From positions 13,888,001 through 13,952,000 of the forward strand of contig NC_087248.1 of NCBI RefSeq assembly GCF_037042905.1: a stretch of 64,000 nt of DNA, written 5' to 3'. This DNA comes from Lytechinus pictus (taxonomy: Eukaryota). Positions 1,886 through 32,000 of this stretch are shown in pieces. Position 1 is the stretch's first letter. Each line of letters begins with the position of its first letter. The notes under the pieces are model-generated. The model made no database searches, was not told the DNA's origin, and saw nothing but the letters and a program-made list of their open reading frames with translations. The position numbers and the translations under genes were made by a program.

Positions 1886-2139
1886 TTTGTGTGCATGGTG
1901 CGAGTGTTACGCGCGCTGGTGCGGAGGGTATGTGAGTTGGTGTATAGTGGGGTGTGGGTGTGTATGTGTATAAATGACTATGCGGTAGGGTGGTGTGGGT
2001 GGATGCGATTTGGGCTGTATTACGTATTATCTCGAGTCAATGCGAATCTAACTCAACTAAATGATGATAAACAGCGAGGTTGAAATGGGAAGCAAAATGA
2101 ACCATTCAACAAATAATTTCTAAAAAAGAATCCGATGGT

Positions 2140-3393
2140 TTATGAGTTTGGTGAAAGTTCAGGATTCCCTTTTCCATGAAGATGTATGTAACACACGGTC
2201 GTAAACACAAGTCCAATAGCTAGAAATGATATTATGGAAATTATGATGGCGACGATTTTCTTTACATTTTGTACCCATTCATAAAAAAGTTTCTTGACCA
2301 AAGTGCAATTAGCACTTGGCCCTATGGAAGCTGCAAATTTGCGTAGTTTGGAGGTTTGTTTCGGTGGTAACGTTGTGATTTCAGCTTGCGTTGACGTTGA
2401 AGCAGTTGGCACACTCAAGACCAATTTGGCACAATTCAAAATTGTAGAATAGTTGGAAACCTCAATGAACGATGTACAAGTATTCAGGTCTCCGAGTACG
2501 TTCAACGTTCCTGTGATGTGGACGTTTGGTTTTTGATGAGAGTTATGTTTACAGAGGAACTCTGTGTGATTCTCAAAAGAAGGAATATATAACAATCCAG
2601 TATCATTGTCTTGGATATGGAACCATATTGGATGTGTTTTTCTATTTCCATTGCAGCGTTCAAACACTATCTTATCTTTATTATTTAGAGAGTCCATTGG
2701 TTCTTCAAAAGAAGCAACCCTACACGTCTGGTTTATCATATTCTTTCTATATGTCACCCTGCTTGGTGAATTGTTTGTGTGAAACAATATTTTTTCAAAA
2801 TTTAGAAGCAACGTGAAGCTATTTTCAGAATTGTAAATATCTTGATAATCATTGTCAGATGTTATATTGGAAAGATTCGTTTTCATTTCATCCTCATCCA
2901 ATGGTTTGCAAGACATCGTGACTGTTTTAGTAGTATTCTGAAGAAGCTCTGTGGAAGGAGAGGGGTCGGTAACGGTCAAATTCAGGTTTAAAATGATACA
3001 TTTACTTCTTGATCTATCATGCAGCTTTATTACATGATGACCTGTGTCATTATTCTGAGCATCTTCAATGAATATTGTGACTTTGGTTTTATTTTGTATT
3101 TCTGGAATCAATTTGTAACGTTCAAGGCCGTCTTCCGATCCGGAGCACTGCAGATCATGGGTGCAGATCACTTCCCACATCCTCCCCCTTTTTCGCCATA
3201 ATAGCGAATGGTTCTTGCCGAGTGGTAGATTTAGATATAGACTGAGAGAAACATTCTGCCCTCTGACGACACTTAACGTTTTATCTTCTCTGGGTGCACA
3301 GCTACTACTAGCTGATACAAATGTAAGCTGCCATACCATAAGACCAAAGAGCAGCATCTTCCATCCAAGTTTGACAGTATCCTGACGATGCAT
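2140..3393 (-). CDS. Intronless type-I membrane protein with N-terminal non-canonical V-set Ig-like domain; short cytoplasmic tail (Ig receptor copy A, ~417 aa)
   Basis: ATG at 3393 (the ORF track starts at an upstream TTG). Signal peptide (MLLFGLMVWQLTFVSA), V-set hallmarks (GQNVSL, LLWRK, ERYKL, IFIEDAQNNDTG), many NxS/T sequons, S/T-rich stalk, TM helix IVAIIISIISFLAIGLVFTTVCY, ~15-aa tail. Paralog of 5357-7456. Confidence 0.8.
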   Translation of the reverse strand: MHRQDTVKLGWKMLLFGLMVWQLTFVSASSSCAPREDKTLSVVRGQNVSLSLYLNLPLGKNHSLLWRKRGRMWEVICTHDLQCSGSEDGLERYKLIPEIQNKTKVTIFIEDAQNNDTGHHVIKLHDRSRSKCIILNLNLTVTDPSPSTELLQNTTKTVTMSCKPLDEDEMKTNLSNITSDNDYQDIYNSENSFTLLLNFEKILFHTNNSPSRVTYRKNMINQTCRVASFEEPMDSLNNKDKIVFERCNGNRKTHPIWFHIQDNDTGLLYIPSFENHTEFLCKHNSHQKPNVHITGTLNVLGDLNTCTSFIEVSNYSTILNCAKLVLSVPTASTSTQAEITTLPPKQTSKLRKFAASIGPSANCTLVKKLFYEWVQNVKKIVAIIISIISFLAIGLVFTTVCYIHLHGKGNPELSPNS

Positions 3394-3553
3394 TGTCAAT
3401 GGATAAGACTCAGAGATGCGAAATTATAACCCTATTGATCAACGTCGATTCGTGAAATAATCACATATTTTTCTGGATTCAAAACAGCGTAAGTCATTAG
3501 CATGATGCTGGTAGTGAATAGTAAAAGTAAATCCTTCAAGTATATATCGAGTA

Positions 3554-3863
3554 CAGAAGCGGATCTAGAGGGGGTGTTGGGGGGGTTGCAACCCCCCCCC
3601 CCCAAAAAAAAAAAAAAAAAAAAAAATCCGGGGACCATTTTTTTAAATCTTATCTTTTTTTTAAACTTGTAATTTTATTAGATGCAAGAAAACGCCATTT
3701 TCACACACAGATTTTCAAAAAATTTCCCTATTGTGGGAGGGGGAACACCCCCCTCCCACACCCTCCCCCCTCGCTCGCTCCGCTCGCTTGGACTCGGTCG
3801 CTACGCTCCCTCGCATACCACCCCAACCCCCCCCCCCTTTATAAAAAGCTGGATCCGCCCCTG
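3554..3863. mobile_element. CAG-ended MITE with 5-bp TSD, just upstream of Ig copy A
   Basis: cagaagcggatct... / ...ggatccgcccctg, with GAGTA on both sides. Confidence 0.7.
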
Positions 3864-5356
3864 GAGTATGCATGTTTTCCTCACAGTCATTAACATAGAC
3901 TTTTGAAAGTGAACCATGTAGGCGGACGACTTTGAAAAAGAAAATGCGATTGGCTACAAATTACAAGTAGTCACGCTGGATGGCACTGGTTAGTTCTTCT
4001 TTGCGATGAGTCAAAACAGCGTATTCAAAATCGAAAGAGCGCGTCGACCAAATCGAAAGTATGCAACAGGTAAAATGCTCCGCCATTGGAAAGAAAAGCT
4101 CATGCCCTCGTGAAGTATATTGAAACTTAGTATTGTTTCGAAGATTTTGGTCCTTGAAGAACTACCTTAAACAATATACTGAAAATCGTCTAAACAATCA
4201 AATTAATCTAGATAAAGAGCTCCATTCTGGTTTCCAATTGTCTCTTGACCGATTAACCATATATAGGGATGCTCATTGGACGTGTTTGAATGTTTTATTG
4301 ACAATTTGATCTGTCTACATGTACCTAAGGCGTGAACTGGTCCATTAATATCTTAATGAATTTGAAATGAATATTTGATTGTTTTGTTTTAATGTCTTGG
4401 AACCTTTCTCAGAGGCTTTATCAACCATAAAATTTACGCTGAAATCATTGGCTACATTTTGATATTATACACTTTTTTTCTTCAGATCCGCCACGCGAAA
4501 AAAAAAAATGCTGTCAACAGTGATAAGAAAAACTAAAAATAACCGTGTGTAGATTTATGTTACTCCCTCAACGAAAATTTTCCATTGTTTTTGCAAGAGA
4601 TGATTGGTATTAAAATGATTTTTATGGTTTGAATCCGAAAGACAATAAACATCTCTACCACATCAATCATACTAATCGGTTTTGTGATAGATATAACAAC
4701 CGTGAAGGTCTCGTATACAAGACAAATGTACTTGTTTGTATGTAATTATTTGAAGGAGGGTGTCCAACAATATACTTCAATATGTCAAAATTTATCAATT
4801 CAAAGCAGTCTATTTGATATTTTCTGTCACTTCACCTGCTTGTGACACTGTCATGTCCCGGGGACGTTCTTTCATAGGTAGTGTATCCTTCTGATACTGT
4901 CCTGCCATCTATTATCTAATTGTCTTTTGATTGGTTCGAGTACTATTGCTTAAACTTATAGCGGACGAAACAAGAAATGTGGGTACAAGAAAACAAACCA
5001 AACTTTTCAATCAGTTGTAGGACAAACACTTTTATTTAGATTTTTGTTGAGCTATAGCAGAAAAACACTGATCAAGTAACTGGCGACCAAGCACCATTTG
5101 TATTTTTCGTATCAAACTTTTTTACAACATGCGTGGATTACTTCCAATGGAGTGATAATGATTGAAGGGGATACATTAATTCCATACATACTTCAGGACA
5201 TGTCATTTCTTGAACATCCACATAATGCTAAATAATTTAGGTGACTTAGAATGATATTGCACACCTTAATAATTCCAAGGAACTGTTGATCAAATAATTA
5301 AATACGATAGTAACAATGCTTCTCTGAATCGACTTGTCTGAAAATTATAATTCACA

Positions 5357-7456
5357 ATGCGTCACCACCATAGCTTGACACTTGGATGGAAAATGTTGTT
5401 CTTTGGACTTATGTTGGATCAACTTACATTTGTATCAGCTAGTAGTAGCTGTGTACCCAAAGATGATAAAACGTTAAGTGTCGTCAGAGGGCAGAATGTT
5501 TCTCTCAGTCTATATCTAAATCTACCACTCGGCAAGAACCATTCGCTATTATGGCGAAAAAGGGGGAGGATGTGGGAAGTGATCTGCACCCATGATCTGC
5601 AGTGCTCCGGATCGGAAGACGGCCTTGAACGTTACAAATTGATTCCAGAAATACAAAATAAAACCAAAATCACAATATTCATTGAAGATGCTCATAATAA
5701 TGACACAGGTACTCATGTAATAAAGGTGCAAAGCGGAACAAGAATCAAGTGTACGATCTTAAGCCTGAATTTGACCGTTACCGACCCCTCTTCTTCCACG
5801 GAGCCTCTTCAGAATAATAGTAAAACATTTACAATGTCTTGCAAACCATTGGATAAGGATGGCATGAAAACGGCTCTTTCCAATATAAAATCTGACCATG
5901 ATTATCAAGATATCAACAATTCTGAAAATAGCTTCACGTTACTTCTAAATTTTGAAGAAATATTGTTTCACACAAATAATTTTCCAAGCAGGGTGACACA
6001 TAGAAAGAATATGATAAACCAGACGTGTAGGATTGCTTCGTCAGGAGAGCCCTTATACCCTCTGAATGATAAGGATAAGATAGTGTTTGAACGATGCAAT
6101 GGAAATAGGAAAACGCATCCAATATTGTTCCATATCCGTGACAATGATACCCGATTATTTTATAATCCTTTTTCGGAGAATTACACAGAGTTCCTCTGTA
6201 AACATAACTCTCATAAAAAACCTAACGTCCACATCAGAGGAACGTTGAACGTACTCGGAGACCTGAATACTTGTACATCGTTCATTGAGGTTTCCAACTA
6301 TTCTACAATTTTGAATTGTGCCAAATTGGTATTGAGTGTGCCAACTGCTTCAACGTCAACGCGAGCTGAAATCACAACGTTACAACCACAACAAAACATA
6401 TCTACAACCCCTACAAAAATGTCGGCAGAAACTATCAGTACAGAGAAAGGAGGTGATGAACAACAATACATAGTAATTTTAATCTCAGTTGCATCAATAT
6501 CCGTCATTGCACTTGGATTCTCAGTTGCCTCGTGTTTTTACAAATACAAATTAGTAAGCGGAAGAGGAAACCTTACTGACCATCGAATGAACTTCAAAGC
6601 TGCACATCAGGATGCAGAACCTGTCCAAAGCAATTCTTCTCAGGATTTGTCGCAACACGGTAACAGGGGAACTGTGATATCAGAGAATCCGATTGAAGCT
6701 TCAAGTGACAAAGGAAAGCATGGACATGGTCCAGCTTCATCTGGATGTCAGAGTGAAACTCACGCTAACGAACCACATTCGACACCCTCAGGGTCTGTCA
6801 AGGATCACACCAGACTTCGAGGATTGCCTGATCTTGGGGAAGCAGCTACTTCTACCGACAAGGTGTCCAATAATAAAAACACTCATGTTGATTATTCAGA
6901 AACTATCTATTGCTCTTTGGATGGTTCTGAAGACGAGGGTAACGCTGAAACACGGCCCCCACTTCAATGTTTATCGAGTTCGTTGTTGAGTAGATATGAC
7001 GCCCAATGTGAAGAAGATGCTCCAGATGTAAAGAGTCCTCCTTCGTCACCTAAGGACCTTGGGGATCGGATTGAGCTAAATAATCCCTTTTATGGAGTCA
7101 TTCCTCTACCTTCATCAGGTAAGTCAGATGACCTGACTAGAAACGAAGGAAATCATTCCCTTTCTGACAAAGAATTGCCGTCCTGTATTGCACATACAAA
7201 TACAGGAGGAAGGAATGCGTCGGCCTGTAGTGTCCTGGTGAGGCCAGAAATCGAAGCCTTGTATGCCAAACCCGACAAAAACCGAAAGAAAAAACAGTCA
7301 GATGCTCTTTTAGCCTTGCCCAATTCTTGTCAAGCGGAGTCGACCATTGTAGACATGGATTGCTATTATGTAAACGTTCCGGCAGCCAACAATTCAAGAA
7401 GTTCTACTACGATTGTTACTCGAAAGAGTGATTGCATATATGAATCCTGTGATTGA
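5357..7456 (+). CDS. Intronless type-I membrane Ig-like receptor with ~300-aa cytoplasmic tail carrying tyrosine motifs (Ig receptor copy B, 699 aa)
   Basis: Single ORF: signal peptide, ectodomain paralogous to copy A, TM YIVILISVASISVIALGFSVASCFY, then a low-complexity tail with TIYCSL, NPFY, LYAKP, YYVNV and IYESC. Confidence 0.85.
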   Translation: MRHHHSLTLGWKMLFFGLMLDQLTFVSASSSCVPKDDKTLSVVRGQNVSLSLYLNLPLGKNHSLLWRKRGRMWEVICTHDLQCSGSEDGLERYKLIPEIQNKTKITIFIEDAHNNDTGTHVIKVQSGTRIKCTILSLNLTVTDPSSSTEPLQNNSKTFTMSCKPLDKDGMKTALSNIKSDHDYQDINNSENSFTLLLNFEEILFHTNNFPSRVTHRKNMINQTCRIASSGEPLYPLNDKDKIVFERCNGNRKTHPILFHIRDNDTRLFYNPFSENYTEFLCKHNSHKKPNVHIRGTLNVLGDLNTCTSFIEVSNYSTILNCAKLVLSVPTASTSTRAEITTLQPQQNISTTPTKMSAETISTEKGGDEQQYIVILISVASISVIALGFSVASCFYKYKLVSGRGNLTDHRMNFKAAHQDAEPVQSNSSQDLSQHGNRGTVISENPIEASSDKGKHGHGPASSGCQSETHANEPHSTPSGSVKDHTRLRGLPDLGEAATSTDKVSNNKNTHVDYSETIYCSLDGSEDEGNAETRPPLQCLSSSLLSRYDAQCEEDAPDVKSPPSSPKDLGDRIELNNPFYGVIPLPSSGKSDDLTRNEGNHSLSDKELPSCIAHTNTGGRNASACSVLVRPEIEALYAKPDKNRKKKQSDALLALPNSCQAESTIVDMDCYYVNVPAANNSRSSTTIVTRKSDCIYESCD

Positions 7457-20096: not shown

Positions 20097-20979
20097 ATGG
20101 TGTACCAACTTACATTTTTATCTACTCGTAGTAGCTGTACACCCAAAGAAAATAAAACTTTAAGTGTCGTCAGAGGGCAGAATGTTTCTCTCAATTTATA
20201 TCTAAATCGGCCACTCAGGGGGGCGGTAGGGGTGGTCGCCCCCAAAAAGAAAAAAAGGAAAAGGAGAAAAACAAAAAGCGAAAAGGGAGGAAAGGCATAG
20301 CTTTGTTGTTTTTTCCTTCTTTTTTTGTCAAAAGAATAATAACCTAAACGAAACGTTGATCTTCTCTCTTCATACAAAATTTTGCTTCCGTGCGGGAAAT
20401 ATATCGAAAGCGCCTTCACCCTTTGTTCCCTACACCTTTTTTCTACTCCGTTTTCCCCTTCTCGGCTGTGGGAATCTTATATTTTTGCCAGAAATTATAA
20501 ATTATACATGGGTGTATAAGAGTATGAAAAGTACCTTTTTTTATTGCATTGACACAAAATGTCGGCTCTTCTGTTCGGAGTGGGTAAACGTTACCGTCAC
20601 TTCCCGACTCCCCAAATGAAATTTCTTTGGCTTTTCAGCAAGCAACTATTGGCAAAGTATATCTACCCAAAGGGGGAGGCATTAAATTCGTGCCGTGCAA
20701 TATGCAAAAGTATGTACGATATGAAACTTTATACTAAATCGCTGTACATCCATCTCCTGTCTTGTTTTGTGCCATTGATTCAAAATGTTATAATCACTGA
20801 AAAGGAAGCGCTTAATTTGAGCGAAATTACACAATTTTGTTTCTTGTAAAATAAATCACAGAGGTTTCCGTGCTTCACGAGCACGGGAAAAGGGAACTAA
20901 GTCCCTCTTTTAGCTTCTAGCTTGCATCATCCCTTTCACATTTTGAGCTCGTCTTTCTTCTTAATCGGGTTATAGTCTA

Positions 20980-22085
20980 TGTGACGTTTAAGTCTCATTA
21001 ATTTGTATGTCCCTCGTTAGCAAGTCACAAAATCAAACCGAGTTGCGATACCAATTGTTGAACTCTTGAATGCATGGTTCGACCTGCAGTTTAATGAAAC
21101 AATAAACAATCATAAATTGAATGTCATGAAAAACTTGTACAATTGTCGAATGTAGCGTTAATAATCCAATACCTATACATTCACAAAGCCTTTAAATTGT
21201 ACACGAGTCTAAGACATCAACTGACCAGATAATCTAACAACTGTCCTTATTTGTTTCTTATGTTGTTATCATAAAGCTCTCAATTACCGGTATTCATCAT
21301 TAGGCTGCATCCGAAATAAATAACTACAATAACAAACCATTTTGTAAATATAACCTCAACTGAAACATCAAGGTATGATTAAATTCTCACATTTGTTTCT
21401 CATATCCAAAATTCTATATTAAAAACACATTCAGCCATGCCTAAGGCTACAGAAAATATGCCCCTAGCAAGGCATCCCTAGGTTAGCTTGTAACCTTTGA
21501 CCTACTTTCAGTCATACCACTTGTGCATGACTATTATGACATAAATTACCACTATTATCATAAAGGCATGAATTATCATCACTAACAAACTTCATGCAAT
21601 TATGTACCATTTACTTTTCATATCTTATGTAAATAAACGTTTACTAGCTTAAATCAACACACGTGCGTGCTGCGGTCAAGTTTCGCGCACTACACACACA
21701 GTATTGTACTTATACATATGTACATAGACACACCGAAACTTTCACTGAACATGAGCGATAATTCATACAACTTTTGTAACAAAATTTTCACCAAAATATT
21801 CATCATTTAAATCATTTCTTAATACAAACTATCAGTCAACTATTCTTTTTCATATAAACATCTATTTTTAGAATACTTACAACATTGGGCTTGGTCAAAG
21901 GGCAAAATAACGATGACAACAAATTAGCAAGTGTTCCCAAACCAAGTAAAAACATGGGGGACAAAATACAACGCCCTCTACCGATTGGCAACAAAAACCT
22001 ACGCTTCTGACGTCACCGAAACTTTGTGACCCGGAAACGATATGTAAATTTCACACTATAACCACTTTGCATCGTACACTCTACA
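20980..22085 (-). repeat. 3' LTR (~1.1 kb) of the BEL/Pao element
   Basis: On the minus strand a purine-rich PPT (tttagggggccggaa, 22086-22100) is followed by TGTAG at 22085. The LTR ends ...ACGTCACA at 20980, next to the TSD. No second direct copy exists to confirm the U3 boundary. Confidence 0.7.
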
Positions 22086-22402
22086 TTCCGGCCCCCTAAA
22101 TGTGAAGCCTATACAGCTGAACATTTACAACATAATTAAATATTAGCACATCATCTTTACATGTGTTACACAATTTCCAAAACAATCGCTGCATGCTTAG
22201 TATCTTACACACGACTTGTGCATTAAATATTTACACCTTCTTTTGCTAGAAATCAAATGGACATAAATTTGCATAAATCAACTCCAAAATGAAGACAAAT
22301 GTCTCCCTTGCATACACTCATGCAACTTCTTTGTTAATGAGAATTCTCATCAAAAAGACAATATTGTGGCATTCTTATTCTACAGCTACAGTAACATATT
22401 TA

Positions 22403-22441
<39 letters not shown>

Positions 22442-23518
22442 AATATATATATCAAATCATAATTTGGTTCATTCTTCATCTTGAACCTGAAATAAACAAT
22501 AATGCATCCTTTCAAATTTTGAGTGAAATGTTATACTGCAATAATCTTCTCTGTAATACAAGGCAAATACTCCTTTTAAATATATACAAATTAACACAAC
22601 GTTCAGTTTGTACAAATTACTACGAAAAATGCAAACATCATTCATAAAACTAACCAAAGTGGCTTGATATGATGCAAAGGAGTCCAATTTCTCAAACTGG
22701 ACTAGATATGAGACAATTCTGCTGCTTGTAAAGTTTTACCTCCTCTAATTATGTTTTAGAAAAACCTTTTATTATAGTCTTTTAATTCTATCACAAAATC
22801 ATATTTGTCAAACTATAAATTCACCTCTTAAACAAACATTGTATATTTGACACCTGAATGCTTCCTGAATTCAGCTTTCCTTACAACAAACACATTATTG
22901 TATAAAGGAATTTTCAGTCACAAATTTGCAATAACATGCACCTGTTTCTTGTGTAATCATACTGAGTAAATCTTTCACATATAAATCAGAAAGTCCACAT
23001 TTACAACATGTATGAATAATTGTTCACTGTTTCTTTAAAGAGGGAGGGAAAAGTTCTGAGTTCAATGTTCAGCAGTGGGTCAAACTTGAAGCTCACAGAT
23101 TGTAAGAGTTTAATAACATTTTAGAGTTCAGGTTAAAGTTCATTCTGACTCTGGAATTCTCTCTCTGAATAAATTCTTCTGCAAATTTCTCCAAAACAGT
23201 CACTTCTCTGTTGTAGAGTTCTCTGAGCGAAATGATTGAAATATTATAAATTCTCTCAAATTCTTCTTTTCAAACAGTCTTGGCTGGATAAATTGCTCAA
23301 AAGAAAAAGATAATTGTTCAATATCACAGATAAACTATGCTTCTTCATCTGGGTTGATCCACTAATACCGATTGCTCCAAATATCTCGTTGGCTCAAATA
23401 GCAAATGCTCCAAAATTATTAATTTCAAATATATAAGAGGCAGCGCTTGGCTTGCACCTCATCACAACATATTTCATATTTCCTAGCTGTTGTGATATAG
23501 ATTCAATTCCACAAATTT

Positions 23519-26500
23519 TCACAGATCCCCTTCCAAAATTAGGCATAACTTGCTAACAGGTCTCAGCCGCACACCCATCTTGGTTTTGACCTCACATTGA
23601 CGGATGAGACCCTTCCTATCAGGCCTCGTCTGTAGCACTCGTCCCAGTAGCCAGGAGTTTCTCGGTGCATTTTGGTCAACCAAAAGGACAACGTCGCCAA
23701 CCTGGATGTTGCGTCTCGGGGAAACCCATCTCTGCCTGGCTTGCAGTTGAGGTAAGTATTCTTTTACCCATCTAGACCAGAATACATCCGACAGGTACTG
23801 CACTTGCCGCCATCTTCTCCTTGCATATACATCCGTATTGACAGTGATGGAAGGAGGTAGCTGTGGTTTAGTGTTCAGTAGAAGCACATGATTTGGAGTT
23901 AACGCTTCCACATCATTGACATCATTTGTTACCATGGTGATTGGCCTGCTATTTATGATACTCTCTATTTCACAGAAAAGTGTTTGCAGGCCTTCATCAG
24001 TCAGTATCTGCTGTGTAGTGAGAGAAAATAGCACCTTTCTGACAGTCTTGATCATTCTCTCCCACACTCCTCCATGATGCGAGGCACCTGGGGGGTTAAA
24101 GGTCCACTTTACTTCCTTCTGGAGGAGCTCATCATGGAGTTGTGACTGGTTCCATTTTCTGATTTCCATTTTTAGCTCCTTCTCAGCTCCGACTAAATTG
24201 GTACCATTGTCAGATCTGATCTCTTTAACATTTCCTCTCCTTGCCATAAATCGTCTGATGGCATTTATACATGAGTCAGTGTCTAAGGAATGTGCCATCT
24301 CCATATGAATAGCACGTATCGCCAGACATGTGAATACTACTCCATACCGTTTCTCCATGCAGCGTCCCCTTTTCACATCTATAGGTCCGAAATAGTCCAC
24401 ACCAACTCTAGTAAAGGGGGGCTCATCTGGTCTGATTCTGTCTTCAGGTAAATCGGACATCTGCTGTTCCATTACCTTTCCTCTCTGCCTTTTACACATG
24501 ACACATTTGCCCACCATATTTCTAATCAATGAGCTGGCTCCTGTTATCCAGTACTTCTGATGAAGGATTGATATCATGTGATTTCTGCCACTGTGACCAG
24601 ATACTTCATGAATTTTCCTCAGAATAAGCATAGTCACGTGACTGTCTTTAGGCAGTATCACTGGGTGATTAGCTTCATGTGGTAGAGAAGACCTACTCAA
24701 TCTGCCACCCACTCGAAGGAGGCCATCATCCATCTTAGGATCCAGCTTGTAGATCTTACTGTTTTTCTTTACTGTCTTCCACTTCTGATTAGCTCCACCA
24801 TCGTCTGACTGTGCTGTGTTCAAGGCATTTATTTCCTCTGGAAATGCTCTCTTTTGCTCATATGAAAGAATTTTCTTCTCTGCTTCTCTCATTTCATCTA
24901 GTGTCAGTCTAGCTTTCAAAGTCTCTGGTGGATCAGATTTATGTTTGAGCCATACAAAGAACCTCCGAATCCAGCATACTGCTCTCTTCAACCTGTACCA
25001 AGTGGAGTAGTGGCTCAGAAATTCCAAAGTATGGTCAGTCTCAGTTGTCTCCACCATGAATGACTTCCCGTCACTTTTGACCTCAAGATCACTGTCATTT
25101 CCTAGTTTGACATCTGTCACATCTTCAGGCCATGTACTCTCATCATGATAGAGGAAGTCAGGTCCATGTAGCCATCTTTTGTTTTCCTTCATCTCATTGG
25201 CAGTCATACCCCTAGAGGCTTCGTCAGCAGGATTCAGACTTGTCCTCACATGACGCCACTGGTTTGGGTCTGACTTATCTCTGATTGCTGCAACTCTATT
25301 AGCAACAAATGTTTTGAACCTCCTGTCCTCGTTCTTGATATATCTCAAGACAATGGTACTGTCAGTCCAGAACGTCGACTTTGAGATGTTGACATCTAGC
25401 TCCTGTCTCAGAACTCCATCAAGTTTTGTTGCTAGAGTTGCTGCCATTAGTTCAAGCCTCGGCACTGTTACTTTCTTTAAGGGTGTGAGTCTAGACTTGG
25501 CCAATATCAGACTACAATTCACTGTCCCTTCTGTGTTTACCATCACTAAGTAACTCACTGCTCCGTAGGCCTTCTCTGATGCATCAGAAAAATGGTGTAA
25601 CTGGTAGTCCTTCACAGCCCCGAAGTCATGTGGCTTGATACATCTATTTATTGACATGTTTGACATCTCTGGCAGATCCTTCAGCCAGTCTTCCCATTCT
25701 TGTCCTTCACGGTCAGGTACTGGTTCATCCCATTTTAACTTCAATCTGCATAACTCTTGCAAAATGCTCTTTGCCTTCAGGATGTAAGGACTGATGAACC
25801 CCAGAGGATCGTAAATGGACGAAACCACACTCAGCAAACCTCTCCTTGTAGGTGGCTTCTTCTTCGGTACAGCCTTGTACACGAAGCAGTCAGTTTCAAT
25901 GTCCCAACTCAGTCCGAGAGCCCTGTCTACTGGAAGTGCATCATGGTTTAAATCTAATCCCTTTGCCTGCTTTGCTCTCTCTGTTTCTGGGATTGATTCC
26001 AGCACATCAGGATGATTACTTAGCCATTTGGTGAGTCTGAACCCACCTTCCAAGAGCAAACTTCTCAGCTCAGCAGCAATCTTTACAGCTCTCTGTACAT
26101 CATCCACGGACACCAGACAATCGTCCACGTAGAAATTGTGTTGTACCATCTTGACAACTTCCTCATCATACTCTGCCCGATGATCTGCAGCTGTCAGGCG
26201 AAGGGCATAAGTGCAGCAGCTGGGACTCCATGTCCCCCCAAACAAGTGGACACACATTCTATAGACCTCTGGTTGAGCTGTCATATCTCCTGAAGGCCAC
26301 CACAGGAACTTAAGCACATCTCTATCTGCTTCTGGAACCCTCACCTGATGAAACATGGCCTCTATATCAACCATTATTGCCACTGGTGCTTGTCTGAATC
26401 TGAGAAGAACTCCAATGAGTTTATTTGTTAGGTCTGGACCTTGGTAGACTACATCGTTCAAAGCAGTCCCATTACACTTTGAGGCACAGTCGAAAACGAT

Positions 26501-28450
26501 TCGCACCTTATCCGGCTTCATGGCATGCAGGACTGGGTGGTGGGGAAGGTACCATTGTGCCTTATCATCGTGGAAGGAATCTTCTTTAGGCACCTTTTCA
26601 CAGAAGCCCTTCTGTAACAGATCATTCATGCCTTCTGTGTATTTTGAGCGCAATCTGTCATCCTTGCTCAGTTTTCTGCTAAGGCTCACCAGTCTCTGCT
26701 CTGCTACCCATCTGTTATTTGGAAGCTCTGGTGGTCGCTGTTTAAATGGTATGGGCAGCTGATAATGTCCATCTTCCATGGCCTTTCCTTTTGCCCATAT
26801 CTCAGTTACCTTTCTGTCATTCACCGACAGGCCTCTTTCATCAGCGGTTTCTGCTTCCAACTTCCAAAATCTTTCAAGCTGCGTCTCCAGATGACAATCC
26901 CCATCAATAAAGCTGCTTGAAGCCTTGACATGTCCCTGATTAGCCTCTCCAGATATCGGACCATGTAAGGACCATCCAAGAATTGTACGTACAGCATATG
27001 GTCCAGTCTCTGCCTTTCTCACCTCCAGAGGAATGAGGGCCTCAGGTGCATCTTGACCAATCAACAGACCGATCTCTTGCCCTCTTGCAATTGGCAAATT
27101 AATATCTTGTAGATGAGGCCAACCAGAAATCTCTCCTACTGATGCCATGTGATCACTCCTGATGTTTATCCTCTCCTTAGTGAATACATTTTCTATCCTA
27201 ACTGCTTCAGACATTGGGCCAGTATCAACCACCAGATCCACTACCTTGGTTTCCAATGTCTGTTCATTGTCGATGGTGGTCAACGATAGCCTCTGTGTCT
27301 GACCTTTGGCATTCAACTTCTCCGCCAGGCTCTTGGTACAGAAGGAGTTCGTGGATCCTGTATCCAACAAAGCAAATGTTCTCAATGCTTTACCACCAGA
27401 TGCTGTTTGGACTCGAACAGGCACAATGGGCAGGACACATCTTTTACCGGCCCCCGTGGCATTACCAAAGGTGCTTTTAGCAGTCTCGACGAACCCATTC
27501 TGAGATGATGATGCTGTGGTCCCATCAGTCTCACTGGAACTGGATGACTGCTGTCTTGTATCCTTCAAAACATCTGTCTTCTGTGAATCGTCCTTCCTCT
27601 TAAGATGCAGAAACCTACTATGTTTCCTATTACATCCTTTCACAGAGCAGGTTCTATTTAGGAAACATTTACTTGAACTGTGTCCTGGCTTGAGACAATT
27701 AAAGCATAAATGCTTATCCTTCGCCATTTGCAAACGTTCTTCAGGTTTCATGTCCTTAAACAGGTTGCAAGAAAAGATGCCATGGTCCTTGTCACAAAGA
27801 ACACAGTCCACTTCCTTCTTCTTCTCTGATCCAGCAAAGTTGACCCCAGCTGCTTGAGATGATCTTTTCCCAAGTGACTGTTTTGATCCTTGAGGCTGCT
27901 TCTTCTTGTCTCCAAACAGCTCTCCATAGACTGGATCATTGATTTCACAGGCTGCGTCAGTCACAAAGCGTACCACATCTTTCAACTTGGGAGATCTACC
28001 TTGGTGACGGACATCTTTGACGACCTTGAGCCACCTGGCTCTCAGATAATAAGGCAGTCTCTCTACAATCTTTACAAGGTGTTGTTGCGAACTTATCTCT
28101 GCAACCATGTCCACCGCCTGTAGAGTCTCGCAGCAAACCTGCAGCTCATCTGCGAACTTCTGCAGTCCTTTCTTGTCACTTGGCTGCAATGTTGGCCCAT
28201 TAATGACTTTCTTTGTCCAAGCATCTCCTATCTTGAACTTGTTGCCATATCGTTCTTCCAGGATGCTTCTGGCTTTCTTGTAGGCTACTGCAGAGTCCAT
28301 GACCATACACGACTGAATAATGGATCTTGTTTCACCTTGGCAACAACTGAATAACTTCAGAAGCTTGGAGCTGTCATCCAGGGACGTCCTTCCTACCAGA
28401 CTGTCAAATGATGTGATAAATTCATGGTAGTGTAGAGGACTTCCATGCAT
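23519..28450 (-). CDS. BEL/Pao Gag-Pol polyprotein (N-terminally truncated Gag, PR, RT, RNase H, integrase), 1643 aa
   Basis: Three Cys/His knuckles (CVLC..H..C, CFNC..GH..C, CSVKGC..H..LH), protease LLDTGS, RT YVDD, RNase H FSDAS, integrase HHCC plus GVDYFGP, SDNGTN, GVWER. BEL domain order, no internal stops. Confidence 0.95.
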   Translation of the reverse strand: MHGSPLHYHEFITSFDSLVGRTSLDDSSKLLKLFSCCQGETRSIIQSCMVMDSAVAYKKARSILEERYGNKFKIGDAWTKKVINGPTLQPSDKKGLQKFADELQVCCETLQAVDMVAEISSQQHLVKIVERLPYYLRARWLKVVKDVRHQGRSPKLKDVVRFVTDAACEINDPVYGELFGDKKKQPQGSKQSLGKRSSQAAGVNFAGSEKKKEVDCVLCDKDHGIFSCNLFKDMKPEERLQMAKDKHLCFNCLKPGHSSSKCFLNRTCSVKGCNRKHSRFLHLKRKDDSQKTDVLKDTRQQSSSSSETDGTTASSSQNGFVETAKSTFGNATGAGKRCVLPIVPVRVQTASGGKALRTFALLDTGSTNSFCTKSLAEKLNAKGQTQRLSLTTIDNEQTLETKVVDLVVDTGPMSEAVRIENVFTKERINIRSDHMASVGEISGWPHLQDINLPIARGQEIGLLIGQDAPEALIPLEVRKAETGPYAVRTILGWSLHGPISGEANQGHVKASSSFIDGDCHLETQLERFWKLEAETADERGLSVNDRKVTEIWAKGKAMEDGHYQLPIPFKQRPPELPNNRWVAEQRLVSLSRKLSKDDRLRSKYTEGMNDLLQKGFCEKVPKEDSFHDDKAQWYLPHHPVLHAMKPDKVRIVFDCASKCNGTALNDVVYQGPDLTNKLIGVLLRFRQAPVAIMVDIEAMFHQVRVPEADRDVLKFLWWPSGDMTAQPEVYRMCVHLFGGTWSPSCCTYALRLTAADHRAEYDEEVVKMVQHNFYVDDCLVSVDDVQRAVKIAAELRSLLLEGGFRLTKWLSNHPDVLESIPETERAKQAKGLDLNHDALPVDRALGLSWDIETDCFVYKAVPKKKPPTRRGLLSVVSSIYDPLGFISPYILKAKSILQELCRLKLKWDEPVPDREGQEWEDWLKDLPEMSNMSINRCIKPHDFGAVKDYQLHHFSDASEKAYGAVSYLVMVNTEGTVNCSLILAKSRLTPLKKVTVPRLELMAATLATKLDGVLRQELDVNISKSTFWTDSTIVLRYIKNEDRRFKTFVANRVAAIRDKSDPNQWRHVRTSLNPADEASRGMTANEMKENKRWLHGPDFLYHDESTWPEDVTDVKLGNDSDLEVKSDGKSFMVETTETDHTLEFLSHYSTWYRLKRAVCWIRRFFVWLKHKSDPPETLKARLTLDEMREAEKKILSYEQKRAFPEEINALNTAQSDDGGANQKWKTVKKNSKIYKLDPKMDDGLLRVGGRLSRSSLPHEANHPVILPKDSHVTMLILRKIHEVSGHSGRNHMISILHQKYWITGASSLIRNMVGKCVMCKRQRGKVMEQQMSDLPEDRIRPDEPPFTRVGVDYFGPIDVKRGRCMEKRYGVVFTCLAIRAIHMEMAHSLDTDSCINAIRRFMARRGNVKEIRSDNGTNLVGAEKELKMEIRKWNQSQLHDELLQKEVKWTFNPPGASHHGGVWERMIKTVRKVLFSLTTQQILTDEGLQTLFCEIESIINSRPITMVTNDVNDVEALTPNHVLLLNTKPQLPPSITVNTDVYARRRWRQVQYLSDVFWSRWVKEYLPQLQARQRWVSPRRNIQVGDVVLLVDQNAPRNSWLLGRVLQTRPDRKGLIRQCEVKTKMGVRLRPVSKLCLILEGDL

Positions 28451-29005
28451 TCAAGAGTTCAACAATTGGTATCGCAACTCGGTTTGATTTTGTGACTTGC
28501 TAACGAGGGACATACAAATTAATGAGACTTAAACGTCACAGTCTAAGAAATCTCAAAATTGTAACAGGTTAAAGTTTTAGAGAAATTTCTAAAGTTCAGA
28601 GCTTCAACGCCATTCGCGGGAAGGAATAGGGCCTATTTCCTTCCTGCATACCCGTCTTCTACTCTGTTTTGCGACTTGAGTTAAGTTGAGTTAACGAAAT
28701 CTATATAAAATCTGATGTGACCATGCAAGGTAGGCATTTTATACCACTTATGTTCTCAATTTATATAAAACGTTTTAGCTTCCGCGCTTTGCGCGGTAAG
28801 AAGAATTATTTTGAATTCCTCAATCTTTTCCTATTTTGGGGGCGCTAATAATTTCATGATTTACAAAACATGAAAAGAGTGTCCCGTTTTAGGACTATTT
28901 TTTCCGCTCGCGCTTCCCGCTCGTATTAATTATGTACTTATATACCTGTCCTGTTCATGATTACAAAAAAGTGTTTAGAATGCCCCATTTTTAAGTCAGA
29001 AAGAC

Positions 29006-32000
29006 AACAATTTCAGCTCGCGCTTTGCTCTCGCATTGTTTGATTTTTTAACAAGTCCAATTTCGATCAGGCCAGAACATATATTAAAAATTTCTACTCG
29101 CGATTCGCGCTCGCCGTAATTATTTAGTTACATACATCTTGTTCACGATAAAACATTGCTCAGAATGTTCAATTTTCAGGACAAAATACATGAAATTTCC
29201 AACAAAAAATATTTGCTCGCGCTTCGCGCTCATTTTTCAATTAGGGCTTACATGAGATTATTTATTTATGTTTTGTTAGAATGTCTCCCAACTTCATTAA
29301 ATGTGCTCGGTCGCTTCGCTCTCTCGCGTTTGCATATATTAACTATAGGGACTATATATAGCTTAGTATAACACAACAGGTTCATTATTATAGCCATTGA
29401 CAAAAGTCCTTAGAGGCCTTTAACTTAAACATAAAAAGACTTTATGCACATGGTTATATTTCCCGTATACATATCCTTAGGTGTGGGGGTGTCCCCCAAA
29501 TTTTTAATAGGTCAATAATTATTGCTTTCATCCCACCCCCTCCCGCCGTTCACTGCTCGGAACGCATTTACCACGGTGATTTCTGTTATTGTATAGTGTC
29601 ATCATAATTCTAAAACATATTAATAAAACTTAAATGAACATCAAGATCACGGCCGCTTTTGGTTGATTCCTTATTTTATCACAAAACCGGGTGATTGGCT
29701 GAGTATTCAAGTGAATAAAAACAGTATAAAGCCATTTTTGGCGAGGTTTACTTTTAGGAAAATCCCTTCATTTTGTAAAGCTCATATCCATCACATTTTG
29801 TCCGACAAGTTGTCAGATCTCACAACTTTCCTTGATGTTAATTGGCTGAGCTAGAAGCACTGTTACTGTGGTAACTGTCAGATAAAATTGGACTTGTCGG
29901 ATAAAATGTCTGACAAGTCCTACATCCCCCTATTAAATGCTCCCCAGGATTTTAAGATGAGAAAGGGTAAGGAGAGAGAAACAATTTCAGCTCGCGCTTT
30001 GCTCTCGCATTGTTTGATTTTTTAACAAGTCCAATTTCGATCAGGCCAGAACATATATTAAAAATTTCTACTCGCGATTCGCGCTCGCCGTAATTATTTA
30101 GTTACATACATCTTGTTCACGATAAAACATTGCTCAGAATGTTCAATTTTCAGGACAAAATACATGAAATTTCCAACAAAAAATATTTGCTCGCGCTTCG
30201 CGCTCATTTTTCAATTAGGGCTTACATGAGATTATTTATTTATGTTTTGTTAGAATGTCTCCCAACTTCATTAAATGTGCTCGGTCGCTTCGCTCTCTCG
30301 CGTTTGCATATATTAACTATAGGGACTATATATAGCTTAGTATAACACAACAGGTTCATTATTATAGCCATTGACAAAAGTCCTTAGAGGCCTTTAACTT
30401 AAACATAAAAAGACTTTATGCACATGGTTATATTTCCCGTATACATATCCTTAGGTGTGGGGGTGTCCCCCAAATTTTTAATAGGTCAATAATTATTGCT
30501 TTCATCCCACCCCCTCCCGCCGTTCACTGCTCGGAACGCATTTACCACGGTGATTTCTGTTATTGTATAGTGTCATCATAATTCTAAAACATATTAATAA
30601 AACTTAAATGAACATCAAGATCACGGCCGCTTTTGGTTGATTCCTTATTTTATCACAAAACCGGGTGATTGGCTGAGTATTCAAGTGAATAAAAACAGTA
30701 TAAAGCCATTTTTGGCGAGGTTTACTTTTAGGAAAATCCCTTCATTTTGTAAAGCTCATATCCATCACATTTTGTCCGACAAGTTGTCAGATCTCACAAC
30801 TTTCCTTGATGTTAATTGGCTGAGCTAGAAGCACTGTTACTGTGGTAACTGTCAGATAAAATTGGACTTGTCGGATAAAATGTCTGACAAGTCCTACATC
30901 CCCCTATTAAATGCTCCCCAGGATTTTAAGATGAGAAAGGGTAAGGAGAGAGAAACAATTTCAGCTCGCGCTTTGCTCTCGCATTGTTTGATTTTTTAAC
31001 AAGTCCAATTTCGATCAGGCCAGAACATATATTAAAAATTTCTACTCGCGATTCGCGCTCGCCGTAATTATTTAGTTACATACATCTTGTTCACGATAAA
31101 ACATTGCTCAGAATGTTCAATTTTCAGGACAAAATACATGAAATTTCCAACAAAAAATATTTGCTCGCGCTTCGCGCTCATTTTTCAATTAGGGCTTACA
31201 TGAGATTATTTATTTATGTTTTGTTAGAATGTCTCCCAACTTCATTAAATGTGCTCGGTCGCTTCGCTCTCTCGCGTTTGCATATATTAACTATAGGGAC
31301 TATATATAGCTTAGTATAACACAACAGGTTCATTATTATAGCCATTGACAAAAGTCCTTAGAGGCCTTTAACTTAAACATAAAAAGACTTTATGCACATG
31401 GTTATATTTCCCGTATACATATCCTTAGGTGTGGGGGTGTCCCCCAAATTTTTAATAGGTCAATAATTATTGCTTTCATCCCACCCCCTCCCGCCGTTCA
31501 CTGCTCGGAACGCATTTACCACGGTGATTTCTGTTATTGTATAGTGTCATCATAATTCTAAAACATATTAATAAAACTTAAATGAACATCAAGATCACGG
31601 CCGCTTTTGGTTGATTCCTTATTTTATCACAAAACCGGGTGATTGGCTGAGTATTCAAGTGAATAAAAACAGTATAAAGCCATTTTTGGCGAGGTTTACT
31701 TTTAGGAAAATCCCTTCATTTTGTAAAGCTCATATCCATCACATTTTGTCCGACAAGTTGTCAGATCTCACAACTTTCCTTGATGTTAATTGGCTGAGCT
31801 AGAAGCACTGTTACTGTGGTAACTGTCAGATAAAATTGGACTTGTCGGATAAAATGTCTGACAAGTCCTACATCCCCCTATTAAATGCTCCCCAGGATTT
31901 TAAGATGAGAAAGGGTAAGGAGAGAGAAACAATTTCAGCTCGCGCTTTGCTCTCGCATTGTTTGATTTTTTAACAAGTCCAATTTCGATCAGGCCAGAAC

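Follow-up and report, generated by a model that had tools for sequence, protein, structure and literature searches.

The stretch analysed here, referred to as the window, is 64 kb of Lytechinus pictus DNA (C4:13888001-13952000, within an 811-Mb assembly) that contains no N bases, and the subject of this study is a BEL/Pao retrotransposon inserted in it as a unit of 7,561 bp. This unit is bounded by two segments of 98 nucleotides (nt), 20980-21077 and 28443-28540, which are 100% reverse complementary and form the only perfect long inverted repeat of the window. The outer termini read TGTGACG... on the left and ...CGTCACA on the right (TG...CA), and the pentanucleotide GTCTA abuts both of them, at 20975-20979 and 28541-28545. 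On the minus strand, the unit carries a 3' long terminal repeat (LTR) of 1,106 bp (20980-22085) that ends in TG...CA and aligns end to end, at 99.2%, with both LTRs of a full-length sister copy on C3. The left arm of the inverted repeat (20980-21077, minus strand) corresponds to the final 98 nt of this LTR, a putative U5 or R-U5 segment that is the same in both LTRs of the C3 copy; the label U5, given from motifs, is plausible. A polypurine tract, AGGGGGCCGGAA in sense orientation, abuts the LTR (22086-22097, minus strand) and is identical in the C3 copy. It is separated from the stop of the open reading frame (ORF) by an AT-rich non-coding region of 1.4 kb (22098-23518, minus strand; GC content about 0.30-0.34), in which no ORF of at least 150 residues is found in the sister copy and only a plus-strand ORF of 93 residues in the window. 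The right arm (28443-28540, plus strand) is the inverted final 98 nt of the LTR, standing where the 5' LTR, the leader and 180 gag codons would be expected. A three-way alignment indicates that the tetranucleotide CCAT (28443-28446) is common to gag and to the inverted block, so that the breakpoint lies somewhere inside those 4 nt; the inner 27 nt of the block (28443-28469, plus strand) resemble the replaced gag sequence at 21 of 27 positions, with one 2-nt gap. A previous, sequence-only reading of this DNA had recognised the exact 98-bp inverted repeat, the TG...CA ends, the GTCTA on both sides and the retention of a 3' LTR and polypurine tract, all of which agrees with the sequence. The right arm that it described is equally real, with the one adjustment that its breakpoint floats within CCAT.

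The polyprotein ORF (23519-28450, minus strand) encodes 1,643 residues: gag devoid of its first 180 residues, followed by protease, reverse transcriptase, RNase H and integrase. The succession of Pfam domains is DUF1759, which represents gag, then Asp_protease_2, RVT_1, Peptidase_A17, Integrase_H2C2, rve and DUF5641. The match to Peptidase_A17, the Pao signature, has an E-value of 3.6e-51, and the DTG, YVDD, HHCC and D,D,E motifs are legible in the translation. Given this Pao-type domain set on the minus strand, the element is a BEL/Pao retrotransposon read from right to left, the family in which the sequence-only reading had already placed it. The domain order is that of BEL/Pao elements and the flanking duplication falls within their 4-6 bp range, while the two direct LTRs of the group are present in the C3 copy and absent from the window copy. 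The start codon of the ORF (28450), its second codon and the stop just upstream all derive from the inverted block. Residues 3-1643 of the window ORF correspond to residues 181-1821 of the C3 ORF, with 14 amino acid differences and no gaps; an exact-protein look-up found no record of the 1,643-residue product in other assemblies.

The full-length sister (C3:21441018-21450190) is colinear with 20980-28464 of the window at 99.2% identity and shows the canonical organisation of the family. It has two identical direct LTRs of 1,103 bp, a polypurine tract abutting the 3' LTR, a duplication of ACCAC at its flanks and an intact ORF of 1,821 residues that begins 53 nt past the 5' LTR. The window copy keeps the 3' LTR, the polypurine tract and everything from gag codon 181 on. 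From this comparison, it lacks 1,103 + 591 nt, namely the 5' LTR and an internal portion made up of the 53-nt leader and 180 gag codons. The gap is filled by the reverse complement of the final 98 nt of the LTR, joined at CCAT, which agrees with the initial proposal that an inverted LTR end had replaced the 5' LTR, the primer-binding region and the start of gag. That proposal would have failed if the LTRs of full-length members naturally began with the 98-bp sequence. This is not the case, because the canonical LTR begins with TGTAGAG... and the 98-nt sequence is absent from its outer end in the C3 copy. With neither a 5' LTR promoter nor a primer-binding region, the window copy is therefore unable to replicate as a retrotransposon.

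The unit lies in a dispersed host repeat, whose left part (20582-20974) and right part (28546-28855) were delimited by alignment to paralogues. When the flanks are joined with one GTCTA, at least 15 paralogues of this repeat can be aligned right through the join, at 79-85%, and in six of them the 80 nt around the join are free of gaps and contain a single GTCTA. The pentanucleotide is duplicated at the insertion and single in the paralogous empty sites, so it is a true target-site duplication (TSD) and the 7,561-bp unit integrated whole. The earlier claim that the element entered the genome in its present form is thus borne out. Other insertions of the family are likewise flanked by 5-bp TSDs, namely ACCAC (C3), GTGTA (solo LTR on C12) and CATTT (solo LTR, C4:31.44M). 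The host repeat that served as target is at least 700 bp long and has many paralogues, their identity being 79-85% across some 700 bp and 88-92% within the initial 60 bp of the right flank. Both ends of the unit would have been processed as integrase ends and joined to one target with the usual 5-bp stagger. An artefact or a later rearrangement that recreated the exact LTR terminus beside a duplicated target is very unlikely. It could be imagined that a canonical two-LTR copy was rearranged after integration, by a deletion accompanied by an inverted duplication of the far LTR end, given that template switching at microhomology during replication can yield inverted duplications. Such an event would need an outer breakpoint matching the boundary between element and TSD to the base, and would have to recreate the perfect end ...CGTCACA next to GTCTA, a coincidence that makes this origin extremely improbable.

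The position of the junction within gag is informative as to how the two parts were joined. The 3'-terminal 27 nt of the 98-nt antisense-U5 DNA were used as query against both strands of the full-length copy, that is 18,124 positions, leaving out the query's own place in both LTRs. The best position is exactly the gag junction, with a score of 12, compared with 8 for the next independent site and a mean of -2.7 (standard deviation 2.6). Shuffled queries that kept the terminal ATGG reached a score of 12 anywhere in 2% of trials. In the reverse test, in which the gag sequence was the query and all sites were acceptors, the rank was only within the top 1.3%. The gag site thereby ranks first in the acceptor homology looked for in an aberrant transfer of strong-stop DNA, and this first rank among matches to the 3' end of the antisense U5 indicates that the site was chosen by homology. 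Relative to the joint, the similarity is situated on the U5 side, and within it the product has the U5 bases, which is what would be expected of a U5 strand that invaded as the primer. The sequence pattern is most likely to reflect a homology-guided strand transfer in which a short nascent minus-strand DNA would have been the invading end. 

The same features have to be considered in terms of host repair. A 5'-truncated cDNA and a short U5-end fragment could have been joined head to head before integration, by microhomology-mediated or single-strand-annealing joining, and then inserted as a U5/U5 molecule. The 4-nt microhomology is typical of alternative end joining, and the 21/27 similarity would also favour repair of the annealing type. 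On the other hand, this scenario calls for independent breaks at two places, in gag and at a distance of exactly 98 nt from a cDNA end, as well as a mismatched heteroduplex resolved wholly to the U5 version, while DNA of the strong-stop type already offers a free 3' end near this position with no need for a break. We consider host repair unlikely, although it is the alternative to be taken most seriously. A second possibility is that the U5 ends of two cDNA molecules were inserted at one target and their distal ends joined after heavy degradation. In vitro, integrases routinely insert two donor molecules in a concerted manner, and the TSD and pair of U5 ends expected from this possibility are those observed. 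Nevertheless, degradation would have had to leave exactly 98 bp of one molecule while stopping within gag in the other, and the repair would have had to hit the best homology site of the element and to mend a chromosome break without loss. This combination renders integration of two molecules highly improbable.

We propose that the window copy arose when a defective cDNA, made by a low-copy and recently active BEL/Pao family, was inserted once and not long ago, a reading to which we assign a probability of about 0.8. An inverted strand transfer in the course of reverse transcription would have joined the antisense 98 nt of the LTR end to gag, about 540 nt into the ORF, at a 4-nt microhomology on the edge of a 27-nt imperfect similarity. 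In this process a short nascent minus strand reaching 98 nt from the primer, possibly complete strong-stop DNA, would anneal by its 3' end to an existing minus strand at gag. The annealed antisense-U5 DNA would then be extended as a plus strand, acting as a plus-strand primer, and the complementary strand completed by copying. The outcome would be a linear double-stranded DNA with two U5-type integrase ends, both of which could be joined to one target with a 5-bp stagger by the integrase of the element or of a sister copy. We infer that the joint was made by reverse transcriptase rather than by host repair, that the transfer had the polarity just described, and that the integrase joined two U5 ends. 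Under either polarity, the acceptor must be minus-strand DNA and the result two U5 ends. The sequence-only reading had envisaged a copy-back template switch, of which the notion of a strand-transfer error in inverted orientation is retained; its polarity, opposite to the one proposed here, fits the homology on the U5 side less well. If, as in that model, a long minus strand departed from gag and continued at a minus-strand 5' end, nothing beyond the 4-nt overlap would be exploited, and the first-ranking homology would have no explanation.

Several observations weigh against this proposal. The sequence alone cannot separate strand transfer by reverse transcriptase from an annealing-dependent end joining of cDNA pieces by the host. 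For a minus strand to end in a free 3' terminus precisely 98 nt away from its primer, there must be either a pause or the 5' end of the RNA at that point. At the gag site, RNA structure that could act as a pause signal was not detected, the region being less structured than shuffled sequences (z +1.8). In the C3 copy, no primer-binding site of the TGG type follows the 5' LTR; the 16-mer complementary to the sequence that comes after the LTR occurs no more often than a control pattern, and no tRNA gene was present at the seven exact or one-mismatch loci of this 16-mer complement that were scanned. Independent reads do not support the junction either. Logan contigs from other individuals, taken from four further runs of as many studies, were compared with 27600-29400; none of them bridges 28443-28446 or 28540/28541, and no run was listed for a 60-mer of the junction, sampled with two words. 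In the four runs, contigs covering gag continue past 28446 into canonical gag, and those covering the 98 nt continue before 28443 into the canonical LTR. As they come from other individuals, these contigs neither support nor refute the junction, and the insertion is, as far as can be seen, private or polymorphic. The same lack of independent read support is what an assembly artefact, for instance a chimeric or fold-back read, would predict. Such an artefact, though, would not place a 5-bp target duplication inside a repeat with uninterrupted paralogous sites, nor stop exactly at the LTR terminus, nor pick the best homology site, and there are no gaps or N bases nearby; its likelihood appears minimal.

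The inner boundary of the 98-nt block is of particular relevance to the proposed strand transfer. A TATA-like TTTATT is located 24-29 nt upstream of the boundary and an ATTAAA 13-18 nt upstream. Judging from these motifs, the block boundary may be an RNA 5' end. Just upstream of the block, the heptanucleotide GTCGAAC (window 21078-21084) is complementary to GTTCGAC, which is found 4 nt after the 5' LTR (about 9577-9583 of L031), and folding of the U5-leader RNA is no different from that of shuffled sequences (z -0.3). The 98 nt could conceivably represent the entire strong-stop DNA of a BEL/Pao family whose primer is unconventional; it may be a self-primer, as the 7-nt complementarity hints. 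If the RNA starts at the boundary, or is cut there for self-priming, the 98 nt would be complete strong-stop DNA and the event a misdirected first strand transfer. A Tf1-like self-priming would fit both the complementarity and the missing TGG site, and to our knowledge it has not been described for BEL/Pao elements.

At the genomic level, a 29-mer spanning the junction occurs once in the assembly, with up to 3 mismatches allowed, and this uniqueness implies that there is no propagating family. The genome-wide search had been suggested at the outset as the means of distinguishing a family of elements bounded by terminal inverted repeats (TIRs) from a single aberrant cDNA, and its result is that of a one-off. 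The hypothesis of a propagating TIR form, an integrase-type DNA transposon in the making similar to Ginger elements, draws on the 98-bp TIRs starting with TGTGA, the intact integrase ORF and the 5-bp TSD, which resemble the Ginger/TDD layout (PMC2836005). Against it stand the uniqueness of the junction, the canonical form of the other of the two near-complete copies and the retention of gag, protease, reverse transcriptase and RNase H. Moreover, we know of no retrotransposon integrase that excises integrated DNA. A family of this kind can be regarded as extremely improbable.

The BEL/Pao family itself is tiny, low-copy and recently active, and the window insertion is recent. Only the window copy and the C3 copy have a near-complete internal region, and the other members are a 3'-truncated fragment on C6, two solo LTRs (C12 and C4:31.44M) and older relatives at 76-88%. 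The C6 fragment (C6:8354500-8362500) ends abruptly at family sense position 3279. It also shows a 36-nt in-frame deletion between AGTC direct repeats, at about 2896-2901 of that interval and family sense positions 1701-1740, which starts 2-6 nt downstream of the gag site of the junction. Though drawn from very few copies, this hints that strand transfer may have a local hot spot there. The solo LTR with the CATTT duplication (C4:31444082-31447137) has a 42-nt deletion within the terminal 98 nt, between two GACTT repeats. An older relative on C2 (C2:47820500-47825000; 78-88%) exhibits two deletions with all parts in direct orientation, positions 35-661 of the LTR being joined to gag 1902-3665 and this in turn to the last 148 nt of the LTR. 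Two further solo LTRs, 85% identical to the family and with no adjoining gag, are found at C8:39313470-39316572 and C8:27425390-27428492, within a 3.1-kb segment of which there are two copies, inverted relative to each other, separated by 12 Mb and 95.7% identical.

The window copy is a real and unusual defective insertion with two U5 ends, most likely the product of a one-off replication accident and not a new kind of transposon. As a structure, it is a new variant of defective insertion with some mechanistic value. It would constitute a natural record of the integrase of an LTR retrotransposon performing a normal concerted 5-bp insertion on U5/U5 DNA, and likewise of an inverted strand transfer onto DNA whose landing site is predictable from the homology of a short minus-strand 3' end, two processes for which the usual evidence is in vitro work or inference. 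It makes concrete a route from retrotransposon to DNA transposon, in that a single accident can set TIRs around an intact integrase gene. It can be imagined that this copy is the starting form of an integrase-type DNA transposon, its predicted U5 ends being recognised again at the DNA level by the integrase of the family; the prospect is very slim, but if true it would provide a possible path from LTR retrotransposons to Ginger-like elements. No evidence indicates that the window copy has taken the next step in that direction. From a practical standpoint, tools that search for LTRs and TIRs will misclassify such copies, and it is worth screening long-read assemblies for them.

Two other features of the window are recorded here. 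A cluster of short direct repeats, with units of 27-38 nt containing CTCGCGCTTCGCGCTC, extends over 28850-29230 and is very abundant, the summed word depth in Logan contigs reaching about 150,000 in other runs. An inverted repeat of 1,046 nt with 90% complementarity is formed by 2355-3400 and 5350-6395.

In comparison with known systems, the window copy shares with the canonical BEL/Pao organisation represented by the C3 copy the domains and their order, the LTR sequence, the polypurine tract, the TG...CA ends and the 5-bp TSD, and differs from it in having one LTR and U5 ends at both termini. The DIRS-type retroelements are comparable in that inverted repeats bound a retroelement. DIRS elements use a tyrosine recombinase and produce no TSD. 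The window copy, in contrast, has a DDE integrase, a 5-bp TSD and canonical relatives with direct LTRs; a Pfam search of the window ORF detected rve and Integrase_H2C2 and no recombinase domain. Copy-back (panhandle) genomes of negative-strand RNA viruses and 5'-inverted LINE-1 insertions formed by twin priming are also similar, in that a switch to the opposite strand gives rise to terminal complementarity or to an inverted segment. They rely on other polymerases and templates, however; copy-back genomes are replicating RNAs, and what twin priming inverts in LINE-1, at the target site, is an internal 5' segment and not the element's own 3' terminus.

The Ginger1, Ginger2 and TDD elements have TIRs of about 40-270 bp starting with TGTNR, short TSDs and an integrase-like DDE protein (PMC2836005). 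The 98-nt arms of the window copy, which start with TGTGA, are consistent with this description. Nonetheless, Ginger/TDD elements are devoid of reverse transcriptase and RNase H, their transposase groups with Gypsy integrases, they form multi-copy families and their TSDs are mostly of 4 bp, whereas RVT_1 and Peptidase_A17 are present in the same ORF as the integrase of the window copy, and its junction is found once instead of in multiple TIR-bounded copies with TSDs of their own. The suggestion of a Ginger-like transition from LTR to TIR is accordingly not supported: the agreement is one of shape, in a single copy with a full polyprotein and no sign of mobility at the DNA level.

Defective retroviral proviruses offer parallels as regards the mode of formation, since they also result from reverse-transcription errors fixed by integration, with junctions of limited homology and, in some instances, loss of the 5' LTR before integration. 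In HIV-1, defective proviruses have been attributed to aberrant first-strand transfers of complete or incomplete strong-stop DNA (PMC12657518), and inversions are documented among them (PMC9278108). Proviruses of HTLV-1 without a 5' LTR, formed before integration, have also been described (Miyazaki 2007, as cited in PMC3185741). Full-text searches of the literature yielded no LTR retrotransposon or provirus in which an inverted U5 end replaces the 5' LTR as a second integration end. Retroviral mis-transfers of the first strand land on RNA in direct orientation and give deletions; that of the window copy, by contrast, is inverted, would have taken minus-strand DNA as acceptor and would have provided the element with a second U5 end for integration.

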